A DNA stretch of 63,688 nt, filler included, from Basidiobolus meristosporus CBS 931.73 (Eukaryota > Fungi > Basidiobolomycota): NCBI GenBank assembly GCA_002104905.1. It is 3 parts of 3 records of this genome, joined end to end, with 100 filler letters (N's around TTAATTAATTAA, not from the genome) between each part and the next. Parts side by side here need not be neighbours in the genome. Positions count along the whole stretch, not along the records: positions 30,677 to 56,504 come from MCFE01000923.1; 2 more parts are not named here. The stretch is one strand, 5' to 3'. Shown piece after piece: positions 7,831-56,504 of this stretch. The notes under the pieces were generated by a model. The model did not search any database and was not told the origin of the DNA. It saw nothing but the letters and a program-made list of their open reading frames with translations. The translations under genes and the position numbers were made by a program. How positions within the stretch are numbered: position 1 is the stretch's first letter; every line of letters starts with the position of its first letter.

Positions 7831-8768
7831 GCGCGAAAACCTGGAGGGCGTTCTATCAAACTACGTGATTCCCACAATTGATTTATCAGTGTAGCTTGCC
7901 TGAATGAAGGTTTGATATGCTAGCCCTTTGGTACCCATGTTCCATCTCTAATCAGGGAAGGCGCCACACTCTTTGCCTCTGGCAAGTCGTTGAATAAATG
8001 ACATAGCTTCTCCCCATGAAATAAGTTTATACGGCACAGGTAGCATATCCTCCTGATGCAGAGATATCAGCCTCATCCAAGATAGCTAGATTGAAGTCCT
8101 CCACTCTGTGGTTGAGACCTTCATTCTTGTCTTAGTTGGCGGCACTGAAAGTCAGGGTAATGAAGTCAATCTTGGCCCATTTCTTGATGTAAAAGCCCGC
8201 AGTGTAATCCTTCACTCCTTTTTCAGGATTGCATTTTAGACTGTCTTGGGGAGGCAAGGGCACTGCATTGGTACCACTTCACCAGGGTCTCTTGAGTTAA
8301 GTGAGCACTTAGAGGTCAACATTTGGCATTTACCATTACCATGATGAGGCAATGAACCTATTCAAAGATTTTTGACTCTGTTAAGCAGTTCTAACTATAT
8401 ATGAATAAATAAGTTTTGACAATGATAATGCTTTTCATTCAGGTACACAGCATTTTCTTCACCATCATCTCTCTGCCTCAACCAGAAATTTGCTAGATCA
8501 GGAGCTTGGGAGTGTATATAGTCCAGATTGGACTGAGCCAAAAGGCAATAGAAGAGAATAGGATATGGTAATATTAAGAACCAAATGGAGGGCTGGGTGT
8601 ACTATATAGGTACTTTTTGGTTGGATCACTGAAGCTGGGGTTATACTCCTGGCAAAGTATACTGGGCCCAGAGCTTGATGCATATAATTGTGTCTTCTAA
8701 TGTATGCTCATGACAATGAACTAGATATGTAAGCACACAAAACTATTGTTTACAGCAAATACATTACA

Positions 8769-9110
8769 TGGTGAATCTTGTAATTACACCTAAAGATTGA
8801 CCCAACATGATTACTTGGCTTATAGTCCACAGGCCTAAGAGAGCTCTGACCAAGTTCCTTGTGGGGTTTACTTGGAACAGCTCCACCCAAAAGTACAGGC
8901 ACTTAAGAAATGAAATATCTCAAAGTTGCCAATACAGCCCCAAACTTTGCACATATACTCCTGGGACATTCCTAAGCATATTCCATGTGCTTGTCTTGCA
9001 AAGAGTACACAAAAGTGCAATACTACTTTAACTTACAACATATCATTAAGTAAATGCCAAATACTCTACTACTCTTTCAGTAACTTCAATATCTCCAAGA
9101 CTCCTATGAC
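8769..9110 (+). mobile_element. Diverged solo LTR related to the Copia LTR at 36578-36926
   Basis: Shared collinear blocks acacctaaa, cagccccaaactttgcaca, aatactact, caatatctccaagactc; boundaries approximate. Confidence 0.5.
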
Positions 9111-30676: not shown

Positions 30677-30826
30677 CCTTTGGTATGCATGATTTAGCAA
30701 GGAGCTATCAGATTCATATCCACCATTCCCAAATAGTCGAATTCATCTCATTTAAAATTATTTGACAGGGAAAATTTCTACTCCAACACAGCTTAAGAGG
30801 TTAAGCCACTTAGGTATACTTCAACC

Positions 30827-32542
30827 ATGTCCAAAAGCAATGCGTTCATGCGCAACCTGATAGAGCTATGTAAGCGCAGGGGTTTCCTTTTTCAGTCAGC
30901 CGAGATTCACGGCGGTCTTCGTGGGGCCTACGATTACGGACCGCTTGGTGTAGAGCTCAAACGGAACCTCTCGGAAGCTTGGTGGTCCGACATGGTATAC
31001 AAAAAAGATAATGTAGTTGGCGTGGACACCTCTATCATCACCCCACCTGGGGTTTTCAAAGCCTCCGGACATTTGGAATCCTTCACGGATGCTTTGGTGG
31101 ACTGTAAATTGACCAAGGAGAGATTTCGCGCCGACAAGGCCCCGCCGCTTACAGTCATCGAAAAAAACGGCAGAAAAGTGCTCCCTATTGCTGCACCCGA
31201 TAAGGCTGTTGCCAAAGATTGGGAGCAGATGATCCAGCAGCTTTTACCTGGTATTTCGATTTCTCGGCATGGCAAGGAGTTGGTGCTACCCATAGTCGAC
31301 TTCCAGAAGCCTGCCTCGGTGGAAACTGCCGAGACCAACCCTGGAAAAATCATCTTCGAAGGGAAGGAAGCCGCTGTCGAGTTGGCGTACCGCGGCTATG
31401 TGGAGCCAAATAGCAATTCCCCATTTTTGACTGACAGCCGACCATTTAATCTAATGTTCAAAACGTTCCTGGATCCCATCGATCCTATAGAGAGAGTCAT
31501 GACCACTACGTTGGCAGGTTCCCAAGAGACCGATGACATCAAAAAGCTTCGCCAGTCCGTGGACTCGGTGTTGGCTGGATCCACAGTTTTCCTCCGACCA
31601 GAGACCGCGCAGGGAGTCTTCGTCAACTTCCTTGCTTGCCAGCGCACCCAGAAGCTTCGTCCACCCTTCGGCATCGCTCAGATCGGCAAATCATTCCGTA
31701 ACGAGATTCGCCTCGAGCATGCAATCTTTCGTACGCCAGAGTTCGAACAGATGGAGTTGGAGTATTTTGTCCCTCCAGAAGACGATTCTAAATGGCTTTC
31801 ATATTGGACTGAAGAGCGCTTCAAGTGGTGGAAACGGTATGCCAACCATCCAGAGAATTTCCGCCAACGTCCCCACGAAGAGCATGAGCTTGCTCACTAC
31901 GCTAAAGGCTGCGTAGATGTTGAATACAAGTTCCCTTGGGGCTGGGGTGAAGTGGAGGGAGTAGCCAACAGAGGGGATTACGACCTAAAACAGCATTCCG
32001 AGCATTCCGGCGTAAGACTAGACTACAGCGAAGATTCCAAGGATTTGATCACCGAGAGCGGTGAACAAAGGACCGAAAAACGATCATACGTCCCCTATGT
32101 GATCGAATCCTCCTGCGGATTGAACCGCGCTCTTCTTGCTTATCTCGTCGACGCGTACAGCGAGGACAGCGTTATCGACCCCACTACCGGCAAGAGCGCG
32201 AAGAGACCATTGCTACGTCTTCACCCACAATTGGCACCCATCAAGGTTGCGGTCATGCCACTGATGCCTAAGCCGGAGCTGATGCCTCTCACCAAGCAAT
32301 TGGTTAAAGCGTTCCGACGGGAAAGAATCAATGTCCGCTTGGAAGATCAGAATCTCAAGATCGGGAAGCGGTACTATAGACACGACGAGATCGGTACCCC
32401 TTGGTGTGTCACAGTGGATTATCAATCTTTGGAGGACAACATGATCACAATTCGTGACAGAGATACAATGGAGCAAAAGCGTGTTGACATTGAGGGCGTT
32501 GTAAAGATGGTCAAAGAAAAGCTGACTGATGTAGACGAGTAA
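30827..32542 (+). CDS. glyS: Glycyl-tRNA synthetase, bacterial alpha2 (dimeric) type, intronless
   Basis: LCKRRGF..EIHGGL..YDYGPLGVELK, FLRPETAQG, GIAQIGKSFRNE, EFEQMELEYF, GWGEVEGVANRGDYDL, anticodon domain DEIGTPWCVTVD. Confidence 0.92.
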   Translation: MSKSNAFMRNLIELCKRRGFLFQSAEIHGGLRGAYDYGPLGVELKRNLSEAWWSDMVYKKDNVVGVDTSIITPPGVFKASGHLESFTDALVDCKLTKERFRADKAPPLTVIEKNGRKVLPIAAPDKAVAKDWEQMIQQLLPGISISRHGKELVLPIVDFQKPASVETAETNPGKIIFEGKEAAVELAYRGYVEPNSNSPFLTDSRPFNLMFKTFLDPIDPIERVMTTTLAGSQETDDIKKLRQSVDSVLAGSTVFLRPETAQGVFVNFLACQRTQKLRPPFGIAQIGKSFRNEIRLEHAIFRTPEFEQMELEYFVPPEDDSKWLSYWTEERFKWWKRYANHPENFRQRPHEEHELAHYAKGCVDVEYKFPWGWGEVEGVANRGDYDLKQHSEHSGVRLDYSEDSKDLITESGEQRTEKRSYVPYVIESSCGLNRALLAYLVDAYSEDSVIDPTTGKSAKRPLLRLHPQLAPIKVAVMPLMPKPELMPLTKQLVKAFRRERINVRLEDQNLKIGKRYYRHDEIGTPWCVTVDYQSLEDNMITIRDRDTMEQKRVDIEGVVKMVKEKLTDVDE

Positions 32543-33563: not shown

Positions 33564-34902
33564 ATGCCTAAAGAGCCAAAGAAGCGCACTGGCTTCCTTA
33601 ATTCACTAGAGCCGGAGCAGAAAGTTGCTCTGGACGAACTATGGAAGGTGCTCATTGAGAAATTCGAAACGAACGAGGTAGAGGAAACAGAATCGCCCAC
33701 AGAGAACACCCATGAAAACAATAGAAAATCCGGCTTTGGTAAATTCTTCAATAGAAACAAAACGGAAAAAGAGGAGCCAAAACAAACGAAAGCCACTCCG
33801 GAGCCAGAGACCCCCGCCAATCAGCAAACCCTAAGAGAGAGTTTCTGGAGGTTTGTATTGGGCGACCATCCTGATTCGATCCTCCTACGTTACTTGAGGG
33901 CCCGTAAATTCAACGTGAGCAAGGCTTCGAAGATGTTGCTTGGCACTTTGAAGTGGCGTATCCAAAACGATGTATCGGGCATTATTGAGAAGGGAGAGAA
34001 GATCGTCAGCACCCATGTTCTTCAAATTGGGAAGGGTTATCTGTATGGAGTCGATAAAGAAGGAAGGCCTGTTAGGTAAGTGCTTCAATACAGCTTGTAG
34101 TAGTGCATGGCTGGCTATGCCGGGGTGAAGCCAAGTTAAAACCGAATCCTAACCGGCGTATTCGAAATAGCTTTTGTCATGTTCGACTTCACAACAAGGA
34201 CGATGAACCTATTGAAGAACTCGAGAAATTCACCATTTGGTTGATGGAGACCGCGCGTTTATTCCTGATCCCGCCTGCGGATTGTGTCTCTGTTGTCTTC
34301 GACATGAAAGACTTCTCGCTGAGTAACATGGACTATCCATTTGTTTCATTCATGAACAAGGTTTTGGAGAGTCACTACCCCGAAAGTTTGGGGGTGGCAT
34401 TGATATTGGGAGCACCTTGGGTATTCTCTGGTACTATTCATATTTCAACCTTGTCTGACGAAGCAAGTACTCATGTTTCATCTCAGGTGTTTGGAAAGTG
34501 GTCTCCCCTCTACTCGATCCAGTTGTTGCCAGTAAGGTGCAGTTCCTTGACAAATATGAGGATCTACAGAAGTTCATTGAGCCAAGTATGCTGTTAAAGC
34601 AGTTTGGTGGCCAGAACCCTTATGAGTTCAAGTTTGTCCCACCACAGCCTGGTGAAAATGACATAATGAATGATACCGAGGCCAAGAATCTAGCTTACGA
34701 GCAATGGTGGAAATCAGTTGACCAGTTCGAGAAAATCACTGCCACTCGACTTGCTTCCCCAAGCCCAGAGGTGGAGCAACAGCGGGAGGCTGCTGCCAAA
34801 CAGTTACGAGCGGACTATTTCAAATTGGATCCATACATCCGTGCTAGAACAGTCTATCACCGAGTTGGGATACTTCACAATGATGGCTCAGTGCACTGGT
34901 AA
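33564..34902 (+). CDS. Sec14/CRAL-TRIO phosphatidylinositol-transfer protein (CSR1/SFH2-like); exons about 33564-34075, 34171-34430, 34487-34902
   Basis: DHPDSILLRYLRARKFNV, VVFDMKDFSLSNMDY, HYPESLG, SPLLDPVVASKVQF; GT-AG introns restore the frame. Confidence 0.88.
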
Positions 34903-36577: not shown

Positions 36578-38082
36578 TGTTGTAAAAATTCGGAATTCCA
36601 CCTAAATATTCACCTGACTTGATCATTTTGATCATGACCTTCAAATCCTGGAGAATACTGACCACATTCCTTGTCAGGATTTACTTAGAATATCTTCACC
36701 AGAATACCAGGTACCCAGAACATGAAAATTAGATAAGTTGTCCAAACAGCCCCAAACTTTGCAAAAATGTTCCTGGGACCTTCCTTAACCTATTCTATGG
36801 GCTTGTTATGCCAAGACCATGTAAGAGTATAAATACTACTCTTACATTCAGTAAATCATTAAGTGAAAACCACTTAATCTACTTGTCCTCCCAATCACTT
36901 CCAATATCTCCAAGACTCTTACAGCAGGCTATGAGCCCCAAGCTGTCACTCTCTGCAATGTCTACTACTGCTATTACTGGAATATTTCCCTCTGCTGAAA
37001 AGTTGGATGGATCTAACTACCAAGTGTGGAAGGTGACAATGAAGATGCTGCTATAAGAAAGAGGCCTTTGGGATATTGTCATGGGAGAAGAATGCCCTCC
37101 TAAAAACATGGGAGAGGAAGCCTTAAAGTACCAGAAAAAAGAACAAAGTGCCTTTAACTGCATTTGCCTTAATGTCAAGGACAAATTGCTAATTCAACGC
37201 TCAAGAGCAAAAACAGCAAAGAATGCCTGGAAGGCATTAGAAGACACCTACCAGTCATGTTCAGCAGCTAAGAAGATGTATCTGAGACAAAAGTTCTTTA
37301 CCATGAAGATGCAGCCAGTAGAAGAAATGAAAAATTTAATTGACAGAATTACCCTGCTGGTAGATGAGATGGAATCTGTGGGCGTACCAACTACTGATGA
37401 GGATGTGATAGTTACCATCCTGAATAGCCTGACAGACAAGTTCCAGGGCCTTGTATCAGCCCTAGAGTCCAGAACTGAAGATTTGACCTTAAATTACGTA
37501 TATGGAAGGCTCCTGGATGAAGAATTAAGAAAATCAATTGCCAATAAGAGGGAAGAAGAAAATGCTTCAATAAGCAATGATAACCAACAAAGACAATACT
37601 CAAGACCTTTTAAATGCAATAGCAATCTCTTTTGCAACTACTGCAAAAGGACAGGACACATATCAGACCAGTGCTTCACAAAGAGAGATAGACAACAGTA
37701 AAAGCCTAAATATGGAAATGCTGCAACAACTGAAGATAGACTATTCATATCTGCACTAAATATGACCACAAACAAGGATTCTCAGATGTGATATATTGAC
37801 TCTGGAGCATCTCAACACTTTACACACCAAAAAGAACTTTTTACCCAATATCAAGATATTCCAATTAAGAAGGTTTTCATGGGTGAAAATAGAACACTTG
37901 ATGCAGTGGGAGAAGGAACCATCCAATTAAACCTTAGAAGCAGTGAAGTAAGCCATATACTGACCTTCAAAGAAGTACTCTATGTACCAGAAATAGCCAA
38001 GCACCTACTATCAGTAAGTAAGGCCACAGCAGAAGAATTTGGTTTCAGCTTTGACAATTCTGGGTGCAGGATCACTGATTAA
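36578..38082 (+). mobile_element. Ty1/Copia relic: 5' LTR 36578-36926, PBS, gag, protease, truncated
   Basis: LTR TGTTG...CAGCA; PBS GGCTATGAGCCC; KLDGSNYQVWK, AKNAWKAL, zinc knuckle CNYCKRTGHISDQC, IDSGASQH; in-frame stops. Confidence 0.9.
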
Positions 38083-39774: not shown

Positions 39775-39960
39775 GGTGATGGTGAGTTTGGTGATTTGGA
39801 TGATTGGTATAGCAATGGCAATGATGGGTGACTTGATAGCAACAGTGGGCTCAGAGATTTGGATGATGGGTGATGGTGATGGTAGGTGATTTGATAGCAA
39901 CAGTGGGTTCAGTGATTTGGATGATGGGTGATGGTGATGGTGGGTGATTTGATAGTGACA
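39775..39960. repeat. About 58-bp G/T-rich minisatellite, 3 copies
   Basis: gtgatttggatgatgggtgatggtgatgg..tgatttgatagcaacagtggg repeated, abutting a family A junction. Confidence 0.8.
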
Positions 39961-39961
39961 C

Positions 39962-40287
39962 TTAGGGGGGGAGACAGTCACCAACAGGCAAAATCTTTAT
40001 TTCAGTTGAAACAAAGAAGCCAGCGCTACTATAGTAGCTTTGATACAAGAGTGTGTAGCTGAGGAGAGTTTGTAGGTCAGTTAATAAGAAGTGATGATAG
40101 TTCTTTAGTGCCCAAGACACTGTTCAGTAGGAAGGGGGGTAGCAATAGAGGTAAGAATGACTTGTGAACAACATTAATGAGGAGAATGTGATAAGGATTG
40201 ATATTCATCATAAAGGGAGTGTGCTGCTGCAGATATTGCTGCCAAAGGTCTGTCTAGTACTTCAGGTAGGCCAGCTTGGGTTGTTCT
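39962..40287 (-). mobile_element. Interstitial older 3' fragment of family A
   Basis: TTAGGGGGGG-AGACAGTCACC.. collinear with 52630-52955; ends at a Copia LTR. Confidence 0.9.
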
Positions 40288-41888
40288 TGTTGTAAAAGCT
40301 CATATTTCCCCCTAAATATTCACCTAACTTAGTCACTTAGATCATTACCTTCATATCCTAGAGAATACTGACCAAATTCCTTGTTGGGATTTACTAAGAA
40401 TATTTTCACCAAGTACTGTTGTAAAGTTTGTATTTCCACCTAAATATTCACCTAACTTTGTCACTTAGATCATTACCTTCAAATCCTAGAGCATACTGAC
40501 CAAATTCCTTGTTGGGATTTACTTAGAATATCTTCACCAAAATACCAGGTACCCAGATCATGAAAATTTGATAAGTTGTCCAAACAGCCTCAAACTTTGC
40601 ACATATGTTCTTGCAACCTTCCTTGACCTATTCTACGTGTTTGTTATGCCAAGACCATGTAAAAGTATAAATACTACTTTTACATTCAATAAATCATTAA
40701 GTGAAAACCACACAATCTACTTGTCCTCCCAATCACTTCCAATACCTCCAAGACTCTTACAACAGGTTATGAGCCCTGAGCTGTCACTCTCTGCAATGTC
40801 TACTACTGCTATTACTGGAGTTTTTCCCTCTGCTGAAAAGTTGGATTGATCTAACTACCAAGTGTGCAAAGTGAAAATGAAGACACAGCTATAAGAAAGA
40901 GACCTATGTGATGCTGTAATAGGACAAGAATGCTCTCCTAAAATTGCCAGAGAGGGAGCCTTAAAGTAGCAGAAGAAACAACAAAGTGCTTTTGACTGCA
41001 TTGGCCTTACTATTGAGATAAATTGCATATTCCATGCTCCACAGATATCAGCAAGTATTGCCTTGAGGATATTAGAAGACACCTACCAGTCATGTTAAGT
41101 GGCTAAGAAAATGTATCTTAAACAAAAATTGGTGACTGCAAAGATGCTTCCAGCAGAAGAAATGAAGAGTTTTATCAACTAAATTACCTTTTTGGTTGAT
41201 CAGATGGAAGTTGTAGTTGTCCAAACAGCCTCAAACTTTGCACACATGTTCTTGGGACCTTCCTTAATCTATTCTACGTGTTTGTTATGCCAAGACCATG
41301 TAAAAGTATAAATACTACTTTTACATTCAATAAATCATTAAGTGAAAACCACATAATCTACTTGTCCTCCCAATCACTTCCAATATCTCCAAGACTCTTA
41401 CAGCAGGCTATGAGCCCCAAGCTGTCACTCTCTGCAATTTCTACTACTGCTATTACTGGAATTTTTCCCTCTGCTGAAAAGTTGGATGGCTCTAACTACC
41501 AAGTGTGGAAGGTGAAGATGAAGATACTGCTACAAGAAAGAGGCCTTTGGGATATTGTCATGAGAGAAGAATGCCCTACTAAAAACATGGGAGAGGAAGC
41601 CTCAAAGTACCAGAAGAAAGAACAAAGTGCCTTTAACTGCATTTGCCTTAATGTCAAGGACAAATTGCTAATTCAATGCTCAAGAGCAAAAACGGCAAAG
41701 AATGCCTGGAAAGCATTAGAAGACACCTACCAGTCATGTTCAGCTGCCAAGAAAATGTATCTGAGATGAAAATTCTTTACTACAAAGATGCTGCCAGGAG
41801 AAGAAATGAAAAATCTAATTAACAGAATTACATTACTGGTAGATGAAATGGGTGAATATTTAGGTGGAAATACAAATTTTTACAATAG
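40288..41888 (+). mobile_element. Nested Copia LTR/gag relics
   Basis: Partial LTR 40288-40416, full LTR 40417-40764 (TGTTG..CAACA), PBS GGTTATGAGCCCTG, gag with stops; LTR 3' part 41215-41405 plus gag; inverted LTR start at 41851-41888. Confidence 0.85.
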
Positions 41889-45025: not shown

Positions 45026-47995
45026 CTAAATGTGATGTGCAAAATTCCGGTGCTTGAATAGCTTAAGTCTGTTTCCTGCCACAGGTGCTCTTAGCGGTGT
45101 TTCATCAAGTTCAGACAAGTAGTAGCTTCCATTTCCAATCACCTTAGAGAAAATAAATGGGCCAGACCACTTATTGTCAAATTTGCGACTCCACTGCTTA
45201 TCTGAAGTGGAATCATAGAGCAGTATTGGATCTCCTTGCAGCAATGGCTTTGGTCTAAGGCTATGTGACTTGTCAAATGGTTCCTTGTTCTGAAGTCTTG
45301 TCTCTTTAAGTTTAGCAGCTGCTTGGGTAATATCAAGTTCATGGTGATCAAGCTGCTTGAAGCGTGTAGTCAGTAGTTCTTCTGTACTCATTGTAGTTCT
45401 CCACTCTAGCATGTTCCAGGATGTTGAGTCAAGCTCTATGGGAAGAACGCAATTGTGTCCATAAAGCAATTTGAGTGGAGATAGGCCTGTACTGCGTTTT
45501 GTAGTGATTCTATCTGCCCAGAGTGCTAGATGAAGTTGTCTAGGCCACTGTAGTGTCATGTTGTTGCAGCTCTTGACCAGGGAGCTAACCAACGGGCCAG
45601 GGCCCCTTTCAACCATTCCATTGGCCTGTGGGTGATAAGCGGTGGTGAAAGCAATATGAATCTTGTATTGTGAGCAGAGTTCCTGGATCAAATTTGAAGT
45701 CATTTCTCCTTGGTCAGCAACAAACTGGCTGATGCAGCCAAATCTGCACATTATATCTTCAAGAATAAATCTCTATATTGTGTGGCTTTTGTTATTGGAT
45801 AGAGCTCAAGCTTCTACCCACCCACTCAGATCATCTCTGGCAACAACTAGGTACTTCTTGTTTCCAGCAGCTGGCATGTGGACCAGGTCAATTCCAACCT
45901 TCTACCATAGGCAAGGTGTGTAGGTTGGATGGAGCAGCTCCTTATATCTCTTGGTTGACCTTCTTTGGCAAATGTCACAAGATTCAACAAAGTGTTGGAC
46001 ATCATGATACATATGCTCCCAGTAATACCTACTGGAAACAACATTGTAAGTGGCATCTCTGCCTCTATGACCACCAGGTCTTCCTTCATGAAGGCTTGAC
46101 ATAATAGTCAGTTGTTCCTGGGGCTCAACTATATCTCTCCTTGGTGTCTGTCCAGGCTTTACTTGTTTGAAGAGGAGGCCATCCTTTATGTAGAAATGAT
46201 GGGCCTTCTTCCTGAGCTTTCTGAAATCATGTGGGCTCATTCCTGGCGGCTTCTCTAAGGTTCTCAGATAGTCTTGAATGGTGTTCCACGTAGAGTTGCT
46301 GGGCTTCTTCACATGTAGTTGTCAAATTTCTGCATCAATTATGTCATCAAAGTCAGGGTCCATATCTTCAGACAACTCTAGTCCCTTCCTGGAGAGTGCA
46401 TTGGCCACAACATTTGTCTTGCCAGGGATATGTCTGACCTCAAAGTCAAACATTTTCAGCCATGCCATCCACCAATTTGTGGCATCATCAGGTAGATCAG
46501 GCTTGTTGATCATTCCTATAAGTGACTTAGCATCTGTCTCCAGGATAAAATGTGTCATGTAGAGTTGTGACTTCAGCTTTCTCAGCATCTTCATAACTCC
46601 TAGTAGCTCTCTCTTAATCTGTGAATATCTTTGTTCTCTAGGAGAGAAGAGGCAGCTCTCATATCTGCAGGCATAGCGGTTGCCATCTTCATCATCTTGG
46701 CCAAGTAGTGCTCCAGCTCCTATAGGGCTTGCATCCACTGTCAAGATAGGTGGGCATTCAGTGTTCTGATAGTCAAGAGATCTCAGAGCTGGTGGAGATA
46801 CTAAGGCCACTTTTAGTAATTGCATGGCTTCTTCTTGCTCTTCTCCCCAGTGAATTGGGGCATTTTTTCTCTGTAGTCAGTAGATTGGTTCTGCTATCTC
46901 AGAATATCTTGGGATCCAGATCCTAAAGAACCCACAAGCTGCCACAAACCCACAAGCTTGTGTTAGATTTGTGGGGGTAGGCCAGTTGCATATTTTTTGT
47001 GTCTTGGAGTCACCAGGTGAACGGACAAAGGTGTTGCATCTTTATCCTACAATGGATATCTCTGATACACCAAAGCTGCTTTTCTCTCCACTGATGGTGA
47101 GTCCAGCTTCTTCAATGGCTCCTAATATAGCATCATTGTCTGAAATATGGTCATAGACAAATTTTCTTACTCCAGGCATAACTTCACTTGTGTCCCGGAG
47201 TTTTGGTCCTTTGATGCCTATGTCATCAACAAAGACAGCAAGTTTCTCAGGTATATACTGGTAGAGCACATTTACCATGCATATCTGGAACTGAGCCACA
47301 GAGTTTGTTGCTCCTTGGCTGAGTCTTGTCATTCTTAACAGTCCAAATGGTGTCTGGAGTGCAAACATATCTCTTGATGTCTCATCTAGGGGGATCTGGT
47401 CATACCCTGAGTAGAAATCATATGTTGAGTAGATGGAGTGACCTCTAAAGCTCTCTGCAAAGTCATCAATATATGGAGCTATTGCAGCATCTCTAATAGT
47501 GACAGCATTGGTAGGTTGCATGTCTTGGATGAATTGGAGCTTCCCATTCTTCTTCTTGGTCACAAACCATCTGTTAGCGTAAGGTCCATGGCAAGGTTCT
47601 AGGATACCAGCTTCAATCTTCTTCTTAAGTAGGTCATTCACATCAGCTTGGAGTCCTCTTGGCAGTGGGTAAGGCTTAAATGACCAGGGTGTGTGGGGCA
47701 CTGTATGAATCTTGATAGGGTTTTCAACCAATGTCTTTAAGAGTCCCATCTCCTTGTCATTATATGAGAAAACCTTATCATGTCATTTCAGGGTTTCTTC
47801 AAATAATAAGATCTCCTCCAGTGTTAGGTTTCCATCACCAATGATAAGTTGCTTAAGTCTCTCAGGTGTAAGTTGTATATCTTCTGGTGTTCCTTCTGAT
47901 GGTCTGATGTAATCAGCAGGTTGAGATCCATCACTTAAAGGTGTAAGGGATGGTCTAATCTTCTGTTCTACTGTCTTGTATTTTGTGCAAACCAT
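45026..47995 (-). pseudogene. Gypsy pol (RT, RNase H, integrase) with stops and frameshifts
   Basis: YDFYSGYDQI, QGATNS, VFVDDI; TVDASP..KRELL..TDAKSL; H..GHRG..C..CQ; YHPQANGMVER. Confidence 0.92.
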
Positions 47996-48139
47996 AGCTG
48001 TCTGCTCCTGTATACCTAATGAGCAGCTCCAACTGTTGGGGTGTATATTGTCAGGCTCCTCCTCTTCTTTTATAACAAGATGTGTCTTCTGGCAAGCAGT
48101 ATGTGTTCTCTTATTGTTGGGTGTTACCCCACAGAATGT

Positions 48140-49879
48140 TTACTGTAGTCCTGGGTTTGATCCTTGTATAGTGTACCACACTGACCCATCAGAATAGTTG
48201 GTAGTTGTAGCCTTAGTACTGGTCTCCCATGGTCTGCCTAACAGAAGGTCAAAGTTTGCCTTCTGGCAGATAAAGAGGGGATGCCAGACCTTGATTCCTT
48301 GTACCTCAATAGGGAACTTGTGCACTACACCATTGAGTGGGCTAGATCCTGAGTTTGGATCAGTCATGTTCCATCCAATATCTCTATCAACAGGCAGTAG
48401 CTCCTTGCTTCTAAGCGTGTTCCAGAAGTCTAGCGGCATAACACAAATCTCTGAACCACTGTCAATATGGCAGTCAACAGGATCATCATAAATATACCCT
48501 TTCACCACAGCAGTTGCAACTGAGTAAAAAGTCTTATATTTGGTAGTGTTGTCATCCTTTTGGTGGTCTTCATGGTTTGTCTGGATTATATGGGTGTCTA
48601 TATGTTCAACAGCTTGTCTTCTTGTTCTAAGCTGCTCATCAAAGGTCTTCCTAACAGACGGTGATACACTGATGATTTCTCCAACCAACAAGGCAAGGTT
48701 CTGCTTGCGCAGCTTCTCAGTAATCAGTTGAGGGCTTGAGTAGCCTGCAATCTTTGAGGTAATCTGAAAGTGAGGCAATGGGTCTTGGGTGGGCAGTATT
48801 CCAGGCCTCTTGCCAATGATAACCTCAGGCTCTTCAAACCATGGTGTTCTAAGGATGGGCTTAACAGGTTCTTCAGGAAGGTGTCTCTTAGTAGCAAAGG
48901 CATCTACCTTATATTTTCTGTTGTCAGGGCTGCTTGGACCCACTGTATGAGTCTCAATAGGGGCATCAACAGTAATCTTTCTAGTTGCTGAGTCAGACTT
49001 CTGGAAAAGGGCTCTCATTCCGCCTCTTCTGAAATTAGTGGGAATCCTTTTTCCTTCCCTGTCAGCTAGCATTCCATCAGCATCAAACTGTACTGTTCCT
49101 TCTCTAAGTAGTTGACTAAGTTCTGAGCATTCTTGTCTGGCATGCTGGGTAGAGTCACACCAAATGCAGTGTCTGGGCAAAGGTCTTTGGCCCTCAGTAG
49201 CTACCTCAGCTGAGCCGTTAATCTTGAGGGCTAGCTTTTGTAGCTGTTCAGCAAGTTGGTCAATTCTGTCGGTAGTGTAGGTCTGATTGTCAGCAGCAGC
49301 ACTCTTTAGCTCCTTGGTTGGCTGGTCTGGCAGATTAGATATCAGGAGTCTCATAAAGGTAGAAGTTTGCTTTGCCTCTAGGAGTACACGTTTCATCTCT
49401 GCAAAGCAAGGAATGCCAGACTTGTCATCCTTGGCTGCATCTAAGTCAACTTTCCTTGCCAATTCCTGGGGAAGCCCTTGTGCCAGGTAAAGTGTCATGG
49501 TAAACTCAGTTATAGCCTGGGACTCTAGGAGTGGCTTGGCCATATCTTCATACTGTTGAATGAACTCTTCAAGTGTTAGCTTGGAGAGTCCTGTCCTTCC
49601 AAAGTGCCTGAGGTCTTCAATTCCATAGTATATCTGGGGTCTACCATACTTGGTCTGTAGGTAGGTCTTCTTTAAGGTCCAGTTAGTCAGAATGTCTCCT
49701 TGTCTGAGAAGCTTAGTGGTAATATCATTGGTGCAGTAGTAGGGGAAGTCTTCAGCCATTTCTTGTTGAGATAGGCTGCACATCTTGCAGAGCTTCTCCC
49801 ATTTGAATATGAAGCTTGCCATATTCTTTCCATCAGACTGTGGGGCTCCATGTGAGAGTGGTAACGGCATAGAGTTCAT
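48140..49879 (-). CDS. Gypsy gag-protease
   Basis: 579-aa ORF just after the PBS; CIWCDSTQH knuckle-like motif; aspartic protease IDSGSE..LLLGRPW. Confidence 0.85.
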   Translation of the reverse strand: MNSMPLPLSHGAPQSDGKNMASFIFKWEKLCKMCSLSQQEMAEDFPYYCTNDITTKLLRQGDILTNWTLKKTYLQTKYGRPQIYYGIEDLRHFGRTGLSKLTLEEFIQQYEDMAKPLLESQAITEFTMTLYLAQGLPQELARKVDLDAAKDDKSGIPCFAEMKRVLLEAKQTSTFMRLLISNLPDQPTKELKSAAADNQTYTTDRIDQLAEQLQKLALKINGSAEVATEGQRPLPRHCIWCDSTQHARQECSELSQLLREGTVQFDADGMLADREGKRIPTNFRRGGMRALFQKSDSATRKITVDAPIETHTVGPSSPDNRKYKVDAFATKRHLPEEPVKPILRTPWFEEPEVIIGKRPGILPTQDPLPHFQITSKIAGYSSPQLITEKLRKQNLALLVGEIISVSPSVRKTFDEQLRTRRQAVEHIDTHIIQTNHEDHQKDDNTTKYKTFYSVATAVVKGYIYDDPVDCHIDSGSEICVMPLDFWNTLRSKELLPVDRDIGWNMTDPNSGSSPLNGVVHKFPIEVQGIKVWHPLFICQKANFDLLLGRPWETSTKATTTNYSDGSVWYTIQGSNPGLQ

Positions 49880-50032
49880 TTTGGGTAGGTAGGTTGGTGC
49901 TATAGTCTTGATAATATTGGTAGTCTTGTTTCAATAAATGGGTAACAGCTCAAATCTTCAGGTAAGTCTTGTTGGGTCCTAGGGAGCTTGTATGAACCCC
50001 CCACATTGGGTGCCAAATATGTGGTGGTGTAT

Positions 50033-50489
50033 AGGTGGGGGGGAGACAGTCACCAACAGGTGAAATCTTTATTTCAGTAGAAACAAAGAAGCCAGCGCTT
50101 CTGTTGTAGCTTTGATACAAGAGTGTGTAGCTGAGGGGAATTTGTAGGTAAGTTGATAAGAAGTGATGATAGTAATTCAGTGCTCAAGACACTGTTCAGT
50201 GGGAAGGGGGGTAGCAAGAGAGGCAAGAATGACTTGTGAACAACATTAATGAGGGGAATGTGATAAGGATTGATATTCATCATAAAGGGAGTGTGCTGCT
50301 GCAGATAGGGGGGGAGACAGTCACCAACAGGTGAAATCTTTATTTCAGTTGAAACAAAGAAGCCAGTGCTACTGTTGTAGCTTTGATACAAGAGTGTGTA
50401 GCTGAGGGGAATTTGTAGGTAAGTTAATAAGAAGTGATGATAGTTCTTCAGTGCTCAAGACACTGTTCAGTGGGAATGGGGGTAGCAAG
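50033..50489 (-). mobile_element. Two tandem 5'-truncated family A copies (A1 50033-50305, A2 50306-50489)
   Basis: Each begins TAG(G)n-AGACAGTCACCAACAGGTGA and matches the A5 3' region. Confidence 0.92.
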
Positions 50490-50921
50490 GGTTAGGGGGG
50501 ATGATCATCACCAAAGGGTGAAATCTTGATTTAAATAATAAATAAAGAAGCCAAGTTTGAATATGAATATCTGAGATGCAGGAAGCCTATAAGATAAACT
50601 TTGACTTTGCTGTATCCCAAATATCCTCAATATCAAAGTCTAGAGGAGAGTGTAGCAAGACTGCTTGTTAACTGTAGTATTTCTTGAGGAAGTTTGTGAC
50701 TTGAAGGGAAGGAGAGTTTTTCAACAAGCTAGTAAATCTTTTGAGGAGTTCTTTTTCAGAGAGAATGGCACAAAGAGTGGAATGTCCAAATGATGTCTGA
50801 ATATATGTTCTGAGAGCTCCCAATCCAGCATATTTTTGACTTCTTCTGTAAAATCTTCAACAATATCTTTGTCAAGAATAACTTCCAAGAGATCCCTGGC
50901 AATGTACTGAATGTTAATAAT
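50490..50921 (-). mobile_element. Family C telomeric retroelement, ORF1-only, 5'-truncated
   Basis: GTTAGGGGGG-ATGATCATCACC-AAAG-GGTGAAATCTTGATTT; minus frame IINI..LLEVILDKDIVEDF..W and, after a 1-nt slip, LLKRFTSLLKNSPSLQVTNFLKKYYS*, aligning with D and A ORF1. Confidence 0.8.
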
Positions 50922-51573
50922 TTAGGGGGGAGACAGTCACCAACAGGTGAAATCTTTATTTCAGTTGAAACAAAGAAGCCAGCACTACTGTTGTAGCTTT
51001 GATACAAGAGTGAGGTAGGGTTAGGGCTCAGGTTAGGGTTAGGGGGGAGACAGTCACCAACAGGTGAAATCTTTATTTCAGTTGAAACAAAGAAGCCAGC
51101 GCTACTGTTGTAGCTTTGATACAAGAGTGTGTAGCTGAGGGGAATTTGTAGGTAAGTTAATAAGAAGTGATGATAGTTCTTCAGTGCTCAAGACACTGTT
51201 CAGTGGGAAGGGGGGTAGCAAGAGAGGTAAGAATGACTTGTGAACAACATTAATGAGGGGAATGTGATAAGGATTGATATTCATCATAAAGGGAGTGTGC
51301 TGCTGCAGATATTGCTGCCAAAGGTCTGTCAAGTACTTCAGGTAGGCCAGCTTGGGTTTTTCTGACTGCAGAATATAGTGAGCAAACTTCTTGACTTCAG
51401 GATCTCCAAGTATAGTTCTCCAGCAGGAGCCAGGTGTTGTGTGGTGTGTTCTCTTCCAGGCCTTAATCAGTGGGTTGTTGCAGTGGTGAAGTCTGAGGTA
51501 TAATCTGGTTCTAAGGTAGAGAAGTCTGATCTTATAGGGCATAAACCCAAAAGCACCAAGAATAGCATGTCTG
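50922..51573 (-). mobile_element. Two more truncated family A copies (A3 50922-51012, A4 51040-51573) with variant telomere repeats between
   Basis: Same 3' module; spacer AGGTAGGGTTAGGGCTCAGGTTAGGG. Confidence 0.9.
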
Positions 51574-52629
51574 TTAGGGGGAGGAAAGTCACCAAGTGGT
51601 GAAATCTTTATTTACTTATGACAAGTATCTAAAGAAGCCAAGTTAATCTGAAGTAATTCCTAGAAAGCTAGGTCTGAGAGATATCTTCCTGGTAAGCCAG
51701 GTCTGAGAGTTGAGAAGCTGAGTGGTACTATATTTCCTAGTTAGCTAGGTCTGAGAGAGGTTTCCTGGAAAGCCAGGCCTGAGAAGTGAGAATCTGAATA
51801 TATCTGAGCTAAGTTTTACTGGTTTGCGGTAGCTGAATTGTGGCCGGAATGGCCAGTAGACTAGGGGAACTGAGATGAATTTCTGGGCGATCACTGGCCA
51901 AATTTACTAGGCAAATCTGACCAATTAGCATTTCAAGGATTTCAGCCAATCAGAGCCTTTACTTTGCCCGATGGTTGATCAAGCCATCTCCCAATGAGCA
52001 CACATCAATTTATTGATCAAATTTTGCTGGATCCAGGATTTGAACCCACAACCATGGGTATGGAAGGGTTAGGGATAACCACAAGGCTAAGTGTTCTTGG
52101 TTAGGGGGGGGAGGAAAGTCACCAAGTGGTGAAATCTTTATTTACTTATGACAAGTATTAAAGAAGCCAAGTTAATCTGAAGTAATTCCTAGAAAGCTAG
52201 GTCTGAGAGATATCTTCCTGGTAAGCCAGGTCTGAGGGTTGAGAAGCTGAGTGGTACTATATTTCCTAGTTAGCTAGGCCTGAGTGAGGTTTCCTGGAAA
52301 GCCAGGCCTGAGAGGTGAGAATCTGAATATATCTGAGCTAAGTTATACTGGTTTGCGGTAGCTGAATTGTGGCCGGAATGGCCAGTAGACTGGGGGAACT
52401 GAGATGAATTTCTGGGCGATCACTGGCCAAATTTACTAGGCAAATCTGACCAATTAGCATTTCAAGGATTTCAGCCAATCAGAGCCTTTACTTTGCCCGA
52501 TGGTTGATCAAGCCATCTCCCAATGAGCACACATCAATTTATTGATCAAATTTTGCTGGATCCAGGATTTGAACCCACAACCATGGGTATGGAAGGGTTA
52601 GGGATAACCACAAGGCTAAGTGTTCTTGG
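51574..52629 (-). mobile_element. Two tandem full-length family B tRNA-derived SINEs (B1 51574-52100, B2 52101-52629)
   Basis: Near-identical ~529-bp units; minus-strand head GAACACT-TAGCCTTGTGG (A box) .. GGTTCAAATCC (B box); shared 3' module; no long ORF. Confidence 0.88.
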
Positions 52630-52693
52630 TTAGGGGGGGAGACAGTCACCAACAGGTGAAATCTTTATTTCAGTTGAAACAAAGAAGCCAGCG

Positions 52694-54748
52694 CTACTGT
52701 TGTAGCTTTGATACAAGAGTGTGTAGCTGAGGGGAATTTGTAGGTAAGTTAATAAGAAGTGATGATAGTTCTTCAGTGCTCAAGACACTGTTGAGTGGGA
52801 AGGGGGGTAGCAAGAGAGGTAAGAATGACTTGTGAACAACATTAATGAGGGGAATGTGATAAGGATTGATATTCATCATAAAGGGAGTGTGCTGCTGCAG
52901 ATATTGCTGCCAAAGGTCTGTCAAGTACTTCAGGTAGGCCAGCTTGGGTTTTTCTGACTGCAGAATAAATGCAGCAAACTTCTTGACTTCAGGATCTCCA
53001 AGTATAGTTCTCCAGCAGGAGCCAGGTGTTGTGTGGTGTGTTCTCTTCCAGGCCTTAATCAGTGGGTTATTGCAGTTGTGAAGTCTGAGGTATAATCTGG
53101 TTCTAAGGTAGAGAAGTCTGATCTTATAGGGCATAAACCCAAAAGCACCAAGAATAGCATGTCTGTAGGGGCATTCAGGCAAATGAGGCACCAAGGAGGT
53201 AATGCACCATACTGCAAACTTGTCAAGCTTAGTGCAGTCTCTAGAAGTAAGAGAGAGAAGTGGTAAGCCAAATTCCAGGACAGGGAAGACAAACTGCTTG
53301 AGTAGAAGGAGGCAGCTGGGAGCTGAAGTTGTAGGAGGAGTAACAGCCAGTAGCTTGTGGAGTGCCTGTCTTGCCAGGATAATTCTCTTCTTCAGGTGTG
53401 CTCCAGAGTCTAGTCCAGTAGGAAGGAAAGGAAAGCCAAGATATGTAGCAGAAACCTGAGCAGGTAGAGTGGAGTTCTCCAAGTTGATGGGAGAGCCCAA
53501 AGGTACTGTCTTTGCAATGGAAAGCTGGAGATTATTCTTCTGCAGATACTGGTGGATGGTCTGGGAGTCTTGTTGCACATTGGAGGAGGATATTCTGATG
53601 TCATCAGCAAAGAGAGTAACCAGGCAGTCAGCTGAGAGTCTTGGGAAATCATTCAGGAAGATGGCAAACAGTATAGGACCAAGCACAGAGCCTTGAACCA
53701 CTCCATTAGGAACTGAGAACACAGCTGATTGCTCACTTGGGTGCAGAATTCTTGCTTGTGGATCCACAAACAGAGACCTGACAAGGAGGGTGAGAGAGGT
53801 ACTGGAGAAGCATTGCAACTTGGACCAAAGCAGATTTCTGTCAACTGAATCAAAGGCCTTAGTAATATCAAACAGAACAGAGGGATACTTGCACTGGAGA
53901 GAGTGATCTTGGCTAAGTATGACTGCATATTCCAAGGAGAGGCCAGGAACAAAGCCAAACTGTGCAGGATGAAACTTGAGGGAGTCAGAGTAGAGCTCCT
54001 GAGCAAGCAGAAGCTCAAACACCTTTCTGCAGGTGGGCAGCAGAGATATTGGCCTGTAGGAGCTAGGATCCAGGTGCTTTCCTTTACCCTTGTACAGTGG
54101 CAGAACATTTGCAAAGGACCATTCCTCAGGAGTAGAAAGCTGGGCTGAGCATTGCTGAAACAGTGGAAGCAGAAGTGCAGACATGGCCTTGGTACTAGTC
54201 TTCAGAAGCTCATAAGAGATTGTGTCCACACCTGGAGCAGTAGAGTTGGGAAGCCTCTTGAGCACATTATGGATTCTCCTTTGATCAAGTGCAAGTGGGA
54301 TGGGCAGAGTCTTGAAGTCAGGATGAAAGCCAGGAGTTGAGTACTGCTTTGTAGAGAAGAAGATGTTAGCCAGCTGTTCTGTTGAAGGTAACTTCCTGGA
54401 AGAGGGCCTCATTGCCCTGTAGAGTCTTGATACTGTTCTTGTTATAGAGTTGGAAGATTGCAGAGGCAAGGAACTCATAATATGATCCCAGAGCTGAGTA
54501 TGCAGAGTGTGGTGAATTGCCTTGGAGTGGTGCATTGCTGTCAGGAGGAGTTTCTCTGTTTTTGGGTTAGGGAAACTCAGGTAGCTTTGTTGCAGGGCTG
54601 AAACAATGGATTCCCATTTTCTTGAGGTAACAGCAGTAGTCTTGCATGGCAGTGAGAGGGAGGCAGACACCAGAATCAGATGCTTCACAAAGAGCCAGGC
54701 ATAGTTGAGATCATCTGGCAGAGAAAGTAGCAAACTGGCAAGCTTCAA
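52694..54748 (-). CDS. Non-LTR reverse transcriptase (C-terminal part of ORF2)
   Basis: APGVDTI, YRPISLL, QFGFVPG, FDITKAFD, GVVQGSVLGP, LFADD, YLGFP; open for 684 codons. Confidence 0.95.
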   Translation of the reverse strand: MKLASLLLSLPDDLNYAWLFVKHLILVSASLSLPCKTTAVTSRKWESIVSALQQSYLSFPNPKTEKLLLTAMHHSKAIHHTLHTQLWDHIMSSLPLQSSNSITRTVSRLYRAMRPSSRKLPSTEQLANIFFSTKQYSTPGFHPDFKTLPIPLALDQRRIHNVLKRLPNSTAPGVDTISYELLKTSTKAMSALLLPLFQQCSAQLSTPEEWSFANVLPLYKGKGKHLDPSSYRPISLLPTCRKVFELLLAQELYSDSLKFHPAQFGFVPGLSLEYAVILSQDHSLQCKYPSVLFDITKAFDSVDRNLLWSKLQCFSSTSLTLLVRSLFVDPQARILHPSEQSAVFSVPNGVVQGSVLGPILFAIFLNDFPRLSADCLVTLFADDIRISSSNVQQDSQTIHQYLQKNNLQLSIAKTVPLGSPINLENSTLPAQVSATYLGFPFLPTGLDSGAHLKKRIILARQALHKLLAVTPPTTSAPSCLLLLKQFVFPVLEFGLPLLSLTSRDCTKLDKFAVWCITSLVPHLPECPYRHAILGAFGFMPYKIRLLYLRTRLYLRLHNCNNPLIKAWKRTHHTTPGSCWRTILGDPEVKKFAAFILQSEKPKLAYLKYLTDLWQQYLQQHTPFMMNINPYHIPLINVVHKSFLPLLLPPFPLNSVLSTEELSSLLINLPTNSPQLHTLVSKLQQ

Positions 54749-55465
54749 GTAGTTCCCAAAGTCATTTCTTCTGATTCTTGGTAGCTTTGTGGGTGAGCAC
54801 AGTAAGTTTTGGCAGCTTCTTCTTCACAACTGGTTGCATAGAAAGGGACCAGGCTGGGATGGTCAGAGGCTCTCAAGGATCCTAGCTCAGCTCCAGAGAA
54901 TTGCTTAACTTCATTCCACAAAGTAGAGGGCAGCAGCAGAAGGGCAGATCCAGTCAACACATCTTTTCTCAGATTGAGCACCTAGTGCTAGCAGATGGCT
55001 TTCTCTCAGGAAGTTCAGTAGGAATGTAGACCTTGGCTTCATTCTTGCAGTCAGAGTAGTCTTGTTCTCAGGATGGGGAATGTTGAGATCTCCAAGCAAG
55101 ATAACAGGTGTTGATATAGATTGTTGGTATTGCTGAACCTTCTGGCATATAACTTGCACTTCCTGAAGGGCTAGACTTGGAGGCAGATAGCAGAGCACCA
55201 GACTGATAGTTGGCAACTGGAGAGCAGCACAGTAAGGGGAGTAAAGAGGAACACAGAGCTGAGGAGTATTGATGGTAGAAGAGATGAAGCAGATAGAGGA
55301 GGTATTCTTTGTTCTAGGAGTAGAAAAGCAATATAGATTAGTCAAAAGTATAGAGGGTAGCTGGACATCAATCAAACACAGGAGGGAAAATCTTGAAAGA
55401 AGTCTCTCTAGAGTTGGTCTTGATGGCTGTATGCTGTTGCAGTTAAGCAACAGAACTTCAGGTAG
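54745..55465 (-). CDS. APE-type endonuclease domain (N-terminal ORF2), two apparent frameshifts
   Basis: LLNCNSI, YLPP, LLGDLN, VDWI in one frame; SDHP in another; RT returns to the first frame. Confidence 0.75.
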
Positions 55466-56230
55466 TCAGGCAGAGGTTGTAGCTTCTTCAGAGGCAGCAT
55501 TGATAATGTGACCTGCAGAGTCCCAGAGCTCTTCAAATGGTGCATCACTTAAGTCAGCAAGGAGGGAAATGGCATGATTCTTGAGGAAGTATGCCACATC
55601 ATAGGAGGGGGCTTGTCTCTTGATGGCAGCAAAGAAAGACAGAATGGCAACATGGGCTGGAGGCTTGTTGAACAGTAGAGAGTCAGAGGATTCAGATTCT
55701 TCAGGCACTATCTTGAAGTCAGTTTTCAGCCAGTTAAGGTTCTTCTCCACAAAGGTAACAAATGGGTCAGCAATGTTTTGGTCTAGGATAACCTCCAGAA
55801 TCTTCCCTTTTCTCCAGGCCAGGTTGACAATTCTTGAGAGCTGAATATTGCATGCCTTGAGTGCTTTCCTGATGTTGGAAATGGGAGTCCAGGGAACTTG
55901 CTTCAAGTACACCACAGTCCAGGTAGAAGCTGGTGGTAGGTTTGCTGGGGGCTTGTAAGTCCTTCTGTGTTGCAATGGAGCTGCAGTAGTCAGATTGGAG
56001 TCCACATTCTCAGTAGAAGGTTTTCTTGATGTGTCTTGCTGAATAGTACTGGAGCTGGATGTGCTGATAATTCTTGCTAGAACCTTGCCTGCATAAGTCT
56101 GAGGTATAGCTGAGGTGACTGTAGAGGTGGTGGCAGCTGGTGCAGGTGGAGAGGCAGAGACTAAAGCAGGAACTGAGGTCACCTGGGAGAAGGCAGTGGA
56201 AGCAGGTTTTCTGGGAGGAACAGAGTTCAC
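55466..56230 (-). CDS. ORF1 of family A, 254 aa
   Basis: S/T/P-rich N-half; C-half conserved with the family C and D ORFs; ends in TGA in frame with ORF2. Confidence 0.85.
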   Translation of the reverse strand: MNSVPPRKPASTAFSQVTSVPALVSASPPAPAATTSTVTSAIPQTYAGKVLARIISTSSSSTIQQDTSRKPSTENVDSNLTTAAPLQHRRTYKPPANLPPASTWTVVYLKQVPWTPISNIRKALKACNIQLSRIVNLAWRKGKILEVILDQNIADPFVTFVEKNLNWLKTDFKIVPEESESSDSLLFNKPPAHVAILSFFAAIKRQAPSYDVAYFLKNHAISLLADLSDAPFEELWDSAGHIINAASEEATTSA

Positions 56231-56360
56231 TATCCAGTTGTTCTGTAAAACACTGGAGTAGCTTTTCTGTGGAACAGGATCTTGCTCTTGAACAGGAACA
56301 GAAGCAGGAGGCTGGGGCTGAGCAGTAGTGGTAAGGCAGTGGCTAGGCTTCAGGATAGGG

Positions 56361-56504
56361 TTAGGTTAGGGTTAGGGTTAGGGTTAGGGTTAGGGTTAGG
56401 GTTAGGGTTAGGGTTAGGGTTAGGGTTAGGGTTAGGGTTAGGGTTAGGGTTAGGGTTAGGGTTAGGGTTAGGGTTAGGGTTAGGGTTAGGGTTAGGGTTA
56501 GGTT
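56361..56504 (+). repeat. Telomere (TTAGGG)n, end of contig 2
   Basis: About 23 repeats, preceded by variant units. Confidence 0.98.

Follow-up and report, generated by a model that had tools for sequence, protein, structure and literature searches.

How a chromosome end is put together in an early-diverging fungus is the question raised by a stretch of DNA from Basidiobolus meristosporus CBS 931.73 (assembly GCA_002104905.1). The whole stretch analysed (the window) is 63,688 nucleotides (nt) long and joins parts of three records; positions 30,677 to 56,504 come from MCFE01000923.1 and finish in TTAGGG repeats. The G-strand of these repeats runs 5′ to 3′ outward and the piece therefore represents a right chromosome end. 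Directly beneath the terminal (TTAGGG)n, the final 6.3 kilobases (kb) ahead of the telomere (50037-56343) hold eight co-oriented retroelement copies, all on the minus strand and all with the 3′ end pointing to the centromere. From proximal to distal the order is A1, A2, C, A3, A4, B1, B2 and A5, followed by about 25 TTAGGG repeats. The A copies belong to a long interspersed nuclear element (LINE) family with two open reading frames (ORF1 and ORF2), B is an element resembling a short interspersed nuclear element (SINE), and C is an ORF1-only element. The array is very probably the product of telomere-directed retrotransposition of one kind or another. As to its main route of building, we favour addition of the elements onto the chromosome end itself, with a probability of roughly 0.6. 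The features on which the argument rests are these.

39962-40287, minus strand: interstitial, 5′-truncated A copy (the ninth copy in the window), 95.4% identical to A5.
45026-49879, minus strand: degenerate gypsy-like long terminal repeat (LTR) retrotransposon, with gag/protease, reverse transcriptase (RT) and RNase H-integrase fragments (Pfam DUF4100/RVP_2, RVT_1, rve).
50037-50307, minus strand: A1, 5′-truncated A-family LINE (3′ 271 nt), 97.4% identical to A5.
50308-50489, minus strand: A2, 5′-truncated A copy of 184 nt, 98.4% identical to A5.
50492-50921, minus strand: C, 5′-truncated, ORF1-only, non-autonomous element (blastx matches to ORF1 C-termini).
50922-51012, minus strand: A3, 91-nt 3′ fragment of A, 98.9% identical to A5.
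51013-51038, plus strand: irregular telomere-like tract between A3 and A4, read from the sequence (TTAGGGTTAGGG at 51033-51044).
51039-51574, minus strand: A4, 5′-truncated A copy of about 540 nt, 98.3% identical to A5.
51574-52100, minus strand: B1, full-length, non-coding SINE-like element of 527 nt, 98.7% identical to B2.
52101-52629, minus strand: B2, full-length SINE-like element of 529 nt, with the same 5′ end as B1.
52630-56343, minus strand: A5, longest A-family LINE copy, 5′-truncated inside ORF1 (Pfam RVT_1, alignments); 3′ module 52630-52672, RT ORF 52694-54748, APE domain about 54750-55465, UGA stop 55466-55468, ORF1 remnant 55466-56343.
56344-56504, plus strand: telomere, about 22 nt of irregular repeats and then perfect (TTAGGG)n (56366-56497 perfect) to the edge of the piece.

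The eight copies of the array and the ninth, interstitial copy carry a common 3′ module of about 40 nt, starting in the array at plus-strand positions 50037, 50308, 50492, 50922, 51039, 51574, 52101 and 52630. Read in element sense, the module comprises AATAAAGATT, (T/A)CACC, a loop of 4-6 nt, GGTG, about 8 nt, C5-8 and TAA, the CACC and GGTG segments making a hairpin of 4-5 base-pairs (bp). All 3′ ends consist of a C-run and TAA, after which come zero to two CCCTAA units. Twenty-two positions of the module never vary, although identity among the ORF2 proteins of the families compared is no more than 45-67%. No poly(A) is present on any of the nine copies, and no target-site duplication (TSD) was found at any junction read, whether of the window array, of the interstitial copy or of related elements elsewhere. 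The TTA is kept beside flanks that are not telomeric (at 39962, at the C to A3 junction and at position 6185 of L005, a second scaffold end introduced below), which indicates that the UAA is templated by the element RNA. The position of an AAUAAA motif, 33 nt upstream of the element 3′ end, suggests cleavage and perhaps polyadenylation at about the UAA, with reverse transcription beginning at that boundary. The G-run of 5-8 seen on the plus strand can be explained by register slippage between a primer ending in GGG and the C-run. A first-pass annotation of this DNA had described a co-oriented stack of non-LTR elements attached to the telomere, devoid of poly(A) and TSDs; both statements hold for all eight copies.

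The junctions between elements are short and varied. Telomere-like tracts between elements measure 0-30 nt, whereas the terminal tract is 150 nt or longer. About 26 nt of irregular telomere-like repeat separate A3 from A4 and read as the relic of a telomere once added on truncated A3. At the A2/C, B1/B2 and B2/A5 junctions two nt (GG) precede TTAG, and at A1/A2, C/A3 and A4/B1 there is either nothing in between or a microhomology of 1-2 nt; A2, for instance, meets the truncated 5′ end of A1 through a 2-nt microhomology (TA). Overall, about half of the junctions lack a telomere repeat and show 1-2 nt of microhomology instead. On its proximal side A1 is fused, without TTA, to the degenerate gypsy-like element (...TAGGT+G7), and A2 is joined as ...CAGATA+G7. 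The earlier description of every element as starting at TTAG followed by five to eight G thus applies to six of the eight copies, A1 and A2 being the exceptions. Similarly, its account of most elements as 5′-truncated is right for C and for the A copies, A5 included (it ends at 56343, inside ORF1), and does not extend to B1 and B2, which are intact and share a common 5′ end. Reads were consulted as assembled contigs of four runs, the pieces on the array being 100-1750 nt long. A same-strain read contig runs on from the A5 truncation point into more ORF1, and C is likewise extended past 50921 by a read contig. Dozens of further junctions appear in the read contigs, where 0-6 nt, or in rare cases about 30 nt, part a truncated element from the 3′ module that begins next.

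A repeat-rich end of this kind might have been mis-stitched during assembly. The copy number of the elements is high (17,986 contigs of read run X1 align to the stretch), A5 differs from the read consensus by three single nucleotides, and the read evidence includes no spanning read. Nevertheless, each junction of the array has a truncation point and a microhomology of its own, and the same architecture recurs in other CBS 931.73 scaffolds and in nine short contigs from the Logan and ENA assemblies; an artefact is therefore very improbable.

The anatomy of the array would be accounted for if elements had been added by retrotransposition, time after time, to the very end of the chromosome. The ORF2 protein would recognise the 3′ module, and the C-run-UAA of the RNA, equivalent to about 1.3 units of the TTAGGG complement, would pair with the 3′-terminal G-strand of a chromosome end that is short, eroded or broken. 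The 3′-OH of that end would prime reverse transcription, the plus (G) strand being the cDNA. Second-strand synthesis would make the element 5′ end the new end of the chromosome, which would erode or be left incomplete. Either telomerase would then cap it, the irregular short tracts of TTAGGG being its trace, or the next element would do so directly. Consistent with this scheme, all nine copies in the window have their cDNA strand continuous with the G-strand. Four considerations favour addition to ends over insertion within a long duplex tract: the repeat tracts between elements are tiny or absent; junctions reach unique DNA and element interiors through microhomology; the LTR element bordering the array proximally is truncated, as expected of an eroded end that was healed; and there is a rough age gradient from proximal to distal. 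The truncation, on the 5′ side of the gypsy-like element and 154 nt upstream of the gag ATG, is deduced from the shortness of this leader, a search for the LTR pair having found none. As to the gradient, the rise in identity to A5 from the interstitial copy and A1 toward the distal A copies is a tendency that broadly fits sequential addition. The strand continuous with the G-overhang is also G-rich: GC skew is +0.2 to +0.33 across 49177-56176 of the window, in the array only. A G-rich strand has likewise been reported for other telomeric retrotransposons (PMC10088271).

What enzyme could carry out such reactions is indicated by the coding capacity of the A family and its relatives. The RT ORF of A5 matches PF00078 (E 1.6e-25) and the RT of L1 ORF2p (E 1e-15), with a conserved FADD active site of the YxDD type. 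Its best database match is a sequence of B. meristosporus CBS 931.73 (98% identity over 35% of the query); the next relatives stand at 80, 65, 61 and 50% identity, and the remainder at about 30% (E 1e-30). In full-length relatives (L001, L006, L011 and L012/L013) ORF2 has 922-960 codons; an uninterrupted ORF2 of 922-924 codons occurs among relatives and in the consensus of the reads. Searches by sequence for an APE domain stayed below threshold in Pfam and gave a best E of 0.4 (L1 endonuclease) in a PDB profile search, so that the fold was established through structure prediction. The N-terminal 240 residues are predicted to adopt an APE/ExoIII fold (AF2 pLDDT 82; Foldseek E 1e-10 to APE1/ExoA), the TRAS1 endonuclease being among the structural matches of the model (TMt 0.67), and in an Atlas model of the whole ORF2 residues 4-852 align with APE+RT clusters (TM 0.67). 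Residues N8, D33, Y94, D127/N129 (motif GDxN), D172 and D202/H203 (motif SDH) are invariant in six sequences, including that of the distant family F, and the module-bearing clade has Asp where LINE endonucleases usually have Glu. No RNase H domain, CCHC motif or restriction-like endonuclease (REL) was found in ORF2, and the 220-amino-acid (aa) region after the RT has no Pfam match. The presence of an APE-type LINE, proposed at first from the nucleotide sequence, is thus borne out by the RT profile and by the AF2/Foldseek match. In A5 itself the APE region is interrupted by three single-nucleotide frame breaks (54764, 54859 and 54916 of the window). Most same-strain read contigs lack these three letters, and their removal restores ORF1, a stop and an open ORF2 of 922 codons; the breaks are either mutations specific to this copy, with an intact A-family ORF2 elsewhere in the strain, or indel errors of the assembly.

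In ORF1, a Cys4-like motif at the N-terminus and a coiled coil accompany a conserved domain of about 170 aa at the C-terminus. It belongs to no Pfam family, and the model of the C-terminal domain (AF2 pLDDT 75) has no significant match in the PDB, where weak RRM/ferredoxin-like rows lie at E>0.04. Homologues of ORF1 are confined to this element group, B. ranarum supplying one of them. ORF1 and ORF2 share one frame in every family and are parted by just one stop, conserved within GC(C/A)-TGA-CTN, at the following sites.

55466-55468 of the window (A5): conserved UGA.
2112-2114 of L001: conserved UGA.
1449-1451 of L002: conserved UGA.
2669-2671 of L006: conserved UGA.
905-907 of L011: conserved UGA.
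1666-1668 of L012: conserved UGA.
3245-3247 of L005: conserved UGA.

The APE domain starts (LLLNCNS) about five codons past the UGA and several families have no AUG there. Such an arrangement suggests production of ORF2 in fusion with ORF1, through programmed UGA readthrough.

The kept endonuclease lends itself to a different reading, modelled on the TRAS and SART elements of Bombyx, in which the APE enzyme nicks the G-strand within duplex TTAGGG, the C-run-UAA pairs at the nick and the element is inserted inside the tract. The APE fold and catalytic motifs are preserved across families, TRAS1 supplies one of the structural matches, one or two CCCTAA units occur at many 3′ junctions, and a strand-specific nick would also predict strict orientation. 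SART1 does operate in this manner (PMC7265360). Yet the 3′ junctions without repeats, around half of the total, abut unique DNA or sequence internal to another element, and the 0-30 nt found between elements contrast with the 150 nt or more of the terminal tract. Retention of an APE domain is compatible with addition to ends, as TART and TAHRE of Drosophila keep theirs though they add to chromosome ends. SART1, moreover, requires at least three telomere repeats plus a poly(A) tail (PMC7265360), and neither is present here. Insertion at nicks in duplex repeats is thus possible but, in our judgement, unlikely as the main source of the array.

The two other kinds of element in the array may depend on LINEs. 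B is represented by two untruncated copies (527 and 529 bp) that are non-coding, 98.7% identical and have identical 5′ ends. Its tail is nearer to the LINE tail of the E/P7 type, with which it is near-identical, than to that of A. We read B as a short SINE-like element with a defined 5′ end and a LINE-type tail. It has box A-like and box B-like motifs, each matching at 10 of 11 positions, at nt 12 and 55; it has no TTTT run, a property shared by 6.5% of shuffled sequences, and the fold of its head is no better than that of shuffles (z-score 0.2). A tRNA identity found no support: neither ARAGORN nor Rfam (E<=1 over the array; E<=10 for the head alone) finds a tRNA. The short, non-coding body and the LINE-type tail uphold the SINE partner claimed in the first-pass annotation, and the motifs resembling boxes A and B are all that points to a tRNA origin. 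As for C, blastx matches only the C-terminal third of ORF1 (E 3e-5), about 110 nt ahead of the 3′ module; this restriction marks it as a fragment of an ORF1-only element, in agreement with the partner foreseen, and two further ORF1-only elements occur in L005. Both B and C would be mobilised in trans. The supposition that one LINE mobilises all is unsupported, because at least six LINE families carry the module and the B tail matches the E type more closely than A.

Arrays of the same kind are found at two CBS 931.73 scaffold ends as well as in the nine short public contigs, and these sequences hold at least five further LINE families with the same module, plus other ORF1-only elements. L005, the end of MCFE01000090, starts inside an array of four elements whose 3′ ends point inward: an ORF1-only element, an A fragment, a second ORF1-only element and a full E-type LINE, the last joining unique DNA by its 3′ end at position 6185. 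L004 (MCFE01000244) contains five elements, namely a full F-type LINE, three A fragments and an E fragment, with CCCTAA units between them and the same polarity toward the scaffold end as the window array. In L002, L006, L007, L012 and L013, which are Logan contigs and one ENA contig, full-length elements of different families either follow one another head-to-tail through C-run-TAA(CCCTAA)0-2 or end in CCCTAA. The arrangement is accordingly no chance occurrence, the A copies of the window array being 97-99% identical to A5 and the module and head-to-tail order recurring in other assemblies. In a FastTree RT tree, built on database hits, the seven module-bearing families form one clade with 100% support and a long stem; its sister group comprises fungal LINEs, including one from Rhizopus arrhizus, plus family F. 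Family F (L004:5570-6140 and 6294-11478) encodes an ORF1 of 530 aa and an ORF2 of 998 aa with the canonical APE Glu. Upstream of ORF1 lies an array of about 150-bp tandem repeats; the 3′ untranslated region is different, and the element ends directly on CCCTAACCCTAACCCT, adjoining a truncated A copy.

Several observations count against growth by addition to ends, or limit it. The L004 array is separated from the scaffold end by unrelated sequence and occupies the interval 6.3-15 kb inward; as L004:1-6300 has no similarity to element proteins, this array is not terminal in its scaffold, and together with the older interstitial A copy at 39962-40287 it implies that location is not strictly terminal. 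Two A fragments at L004:11492-13294 have an identical truncation point and form 499-bp tandem units, so unequal exchange or duplication also contributes to array growth. The conserved APE domain argues for a nick made somewhere, which weighs against priming on an end without the endonuclease. The RNA may be polyadenylated after the UAA, in which case its real 3′ end would differ. The hairpin of the module has four invariant pairs and a single covarying one, with one compensatory change and three breaks, and no statistical support. Finally, the read evidence for the array consists of short contigs, none of which spans it.

Some of these facts are also what would be expected if a dispersed set of LINEs and SINEs had piled up in subtelomeres through recombination, duplication or nesting, with no targeting. 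Subtelomeres do gather transposable elements (TEs), gypsy and copia fragments adjoin the array, and both the tandem 499-bp duplicates and the interstitial positions of one window copy and of the L004 array fit such a history. It would leave unexplained, however, the telomere-complementary 3′ ends, the lack of poly(A) and TSDs, the uniform polarity (9 of 9 copies in the window, as well as L004 and L005), the telomere relics at element junctions and the many distinct junctions in the reads between truncation points and module starts. Untargeted accumulation is thus improbable, and addition to chromosome ends remains the preferred route. The interstitial A copy itself starts TTAG+G7; a minisatellite rich in GT (39780-39960) precedes it and copia-like fragments come after. 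A chromosome end that once lay here, or a break since repaired, may have left it behind.

Comparison with known telomeric elements places the system apart from each of them. Like HeT-A, TART and TAHRE of Drosophila, it forms head-to-tail terminal arrays with the 3′ end to the centromere and variable 5′ truncation, mixes autonomous APE+RT elements with a Gag/ORF1-only partner and would heal ends that lack repeats. Arrays of this sort are seen in the window and in L005, where A1 and the element ending at L005:6185 join unique DNA. Unlike the Basidiobolus elements, those of Drosophila have poly(A) ends and replace telomerase; here the ends are C-run-UAA, about 25 TTAGGG repeats cap the array, one partner is SINE-like and the host is a fungus. 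TRAS and SART, of the R1 clade, are alike in being APE-type LINEs in fixed orientation beside telomerase-type repeats. They differ in inserting inside long tracts with repeats on both flanks, whereas half of the Basidiobolus junctions are repeat-free and poly(A) is absent; fixed insertion of this type, with flanking repeats, does not agree with the repeat-free 3′ flanks (about half) or with the tracts of 0-30 nt between elements. The features of an ordinary APE-type LINE are found as regards RT and APE, without the poly(A) or A-rich end and the TSDs.

Endonuclease-independent insertion of L1 at dysfunctional telomeres was reportedly observed by Morrish et al. in 2007. There too, a free 3′ end of the chromosome serves as primer, microhomology is seen and TSDs are absent, but the process is a side pathway that a dispersed LINE takes by accident when cells are deficient in repair, whereas in Basidiobolus it would be the main pathway, served by a dedicated 3′ end. 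The endonuclease-deficient Penelope-like elements Athena and Coprina have a telomere-complementary RNA 3′ end, form terminal co-oriented arrays and attach to G-overhangs via reverse-complement telomere repeats (PMC8557442), a precedent that supports the end-addition reading. They differ in having a Penelope-like RT, no endonuclease and hammerhead motifs, as opposed to a LINE RT, an APE domain and an ORF1; Rfam gave no hammerhead match over the array. A Penelope-like identity was discarded because the APE domain is present and ORF2 structurally matches APE+RT clusters. MoTeR, FoTeR and Cnl1 are fungal non-LTR elements in head-to-tail (sub)telomeric arrays with short TTAGGG spacers and, in MoTeR2, a non-autonomous partner. 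These belong to the CRE clade and use a REL (PMC12857005), an enzyme that the first-pass annotation had named for MoTeR; the Basidiobolus ORF2 has an N-terminal APE domain and no REL or CCHC motif in the 220 aa after the RT, and CRE-clade identity was dismissed on these grounds.

The surroundings of the arrays deserve brief mention. TE debris makes up most of the final 20 kb of the chromosome, with repeated copia-type gag fragments (Retrotran_gag_2, DUF4219) at 36585-37701 and 40295-41870. Of ordinary genes, the nearest encode a CRAL/TRIO protein (33564-34597) and an aminoacyl-tRNA synthetase of class II (30827-32542). In L005, five tandem genes (L005:10790-18266) immediately inward of the terminal array encode CHAP-domain proteins of 181-231 aa. 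CHAP is a peptidoglycan hydrolase domain of bacterial type, and these genes form a subtelomeric family, possibly acquired horizontally. At the 3′ end of contig L011 (3828-3852), Illumina adapter sequence (AGATCGGAAGAGC...) represents an assembly artefact.

Telomere-building retrotransposons are a textbook case of mobile elements that have been co-opted for the maintenance of chromosome ends or live on it as parasites. To our knowledge, cases outside insects are few, and the known fungal ones all have a REL. A 2023 survey of telomeric retrotransposons lists MoTeR1 as the sole fungal entry (PMC10088271), and our literature search on telomeric or non-LTR retroelements of Basidiobolus found no earlier description, as the first-pass annotation had supposed. 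The array resembles the telomere retrotransposons of Drosophila and may be their counterpart in a fungus, working alongside telomerase. It adds an APE-type LINE clade from an early-diverging fungus, with a telomere-complementary 3′ end and no poly(A), and at least six autonomous families with one common 3′ module, accompanied by Gag-only and SINE-like hitch-hikers. It also bears on the assembly and annotation of subtelomeres in Basidiobolus genomes. Whether a LINE RT primes from a natural chromosome end, what purpose the conserved endonuclease serves and how telomerase and retroelements share one end can all be tested in a culturable fungus. More tentatively, and with somewhat less than even confidence, we propose that chromosome ends are maintained here in two ways, by telomerase and by a guild of APE-LINEs, ORF1-only elements and Pol III SINE-like RNA for which the C-run-UAA would act as a template-alignment site of telomerase type in the healing of ends that are short or broken, perhaps to the benefit of the host. 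If true, this would represent an origin of HeT-A/TART-style end-building independent of insects, and a living intermediate between the target-primed reverse transcription of LINEs and telomerase-like priming.

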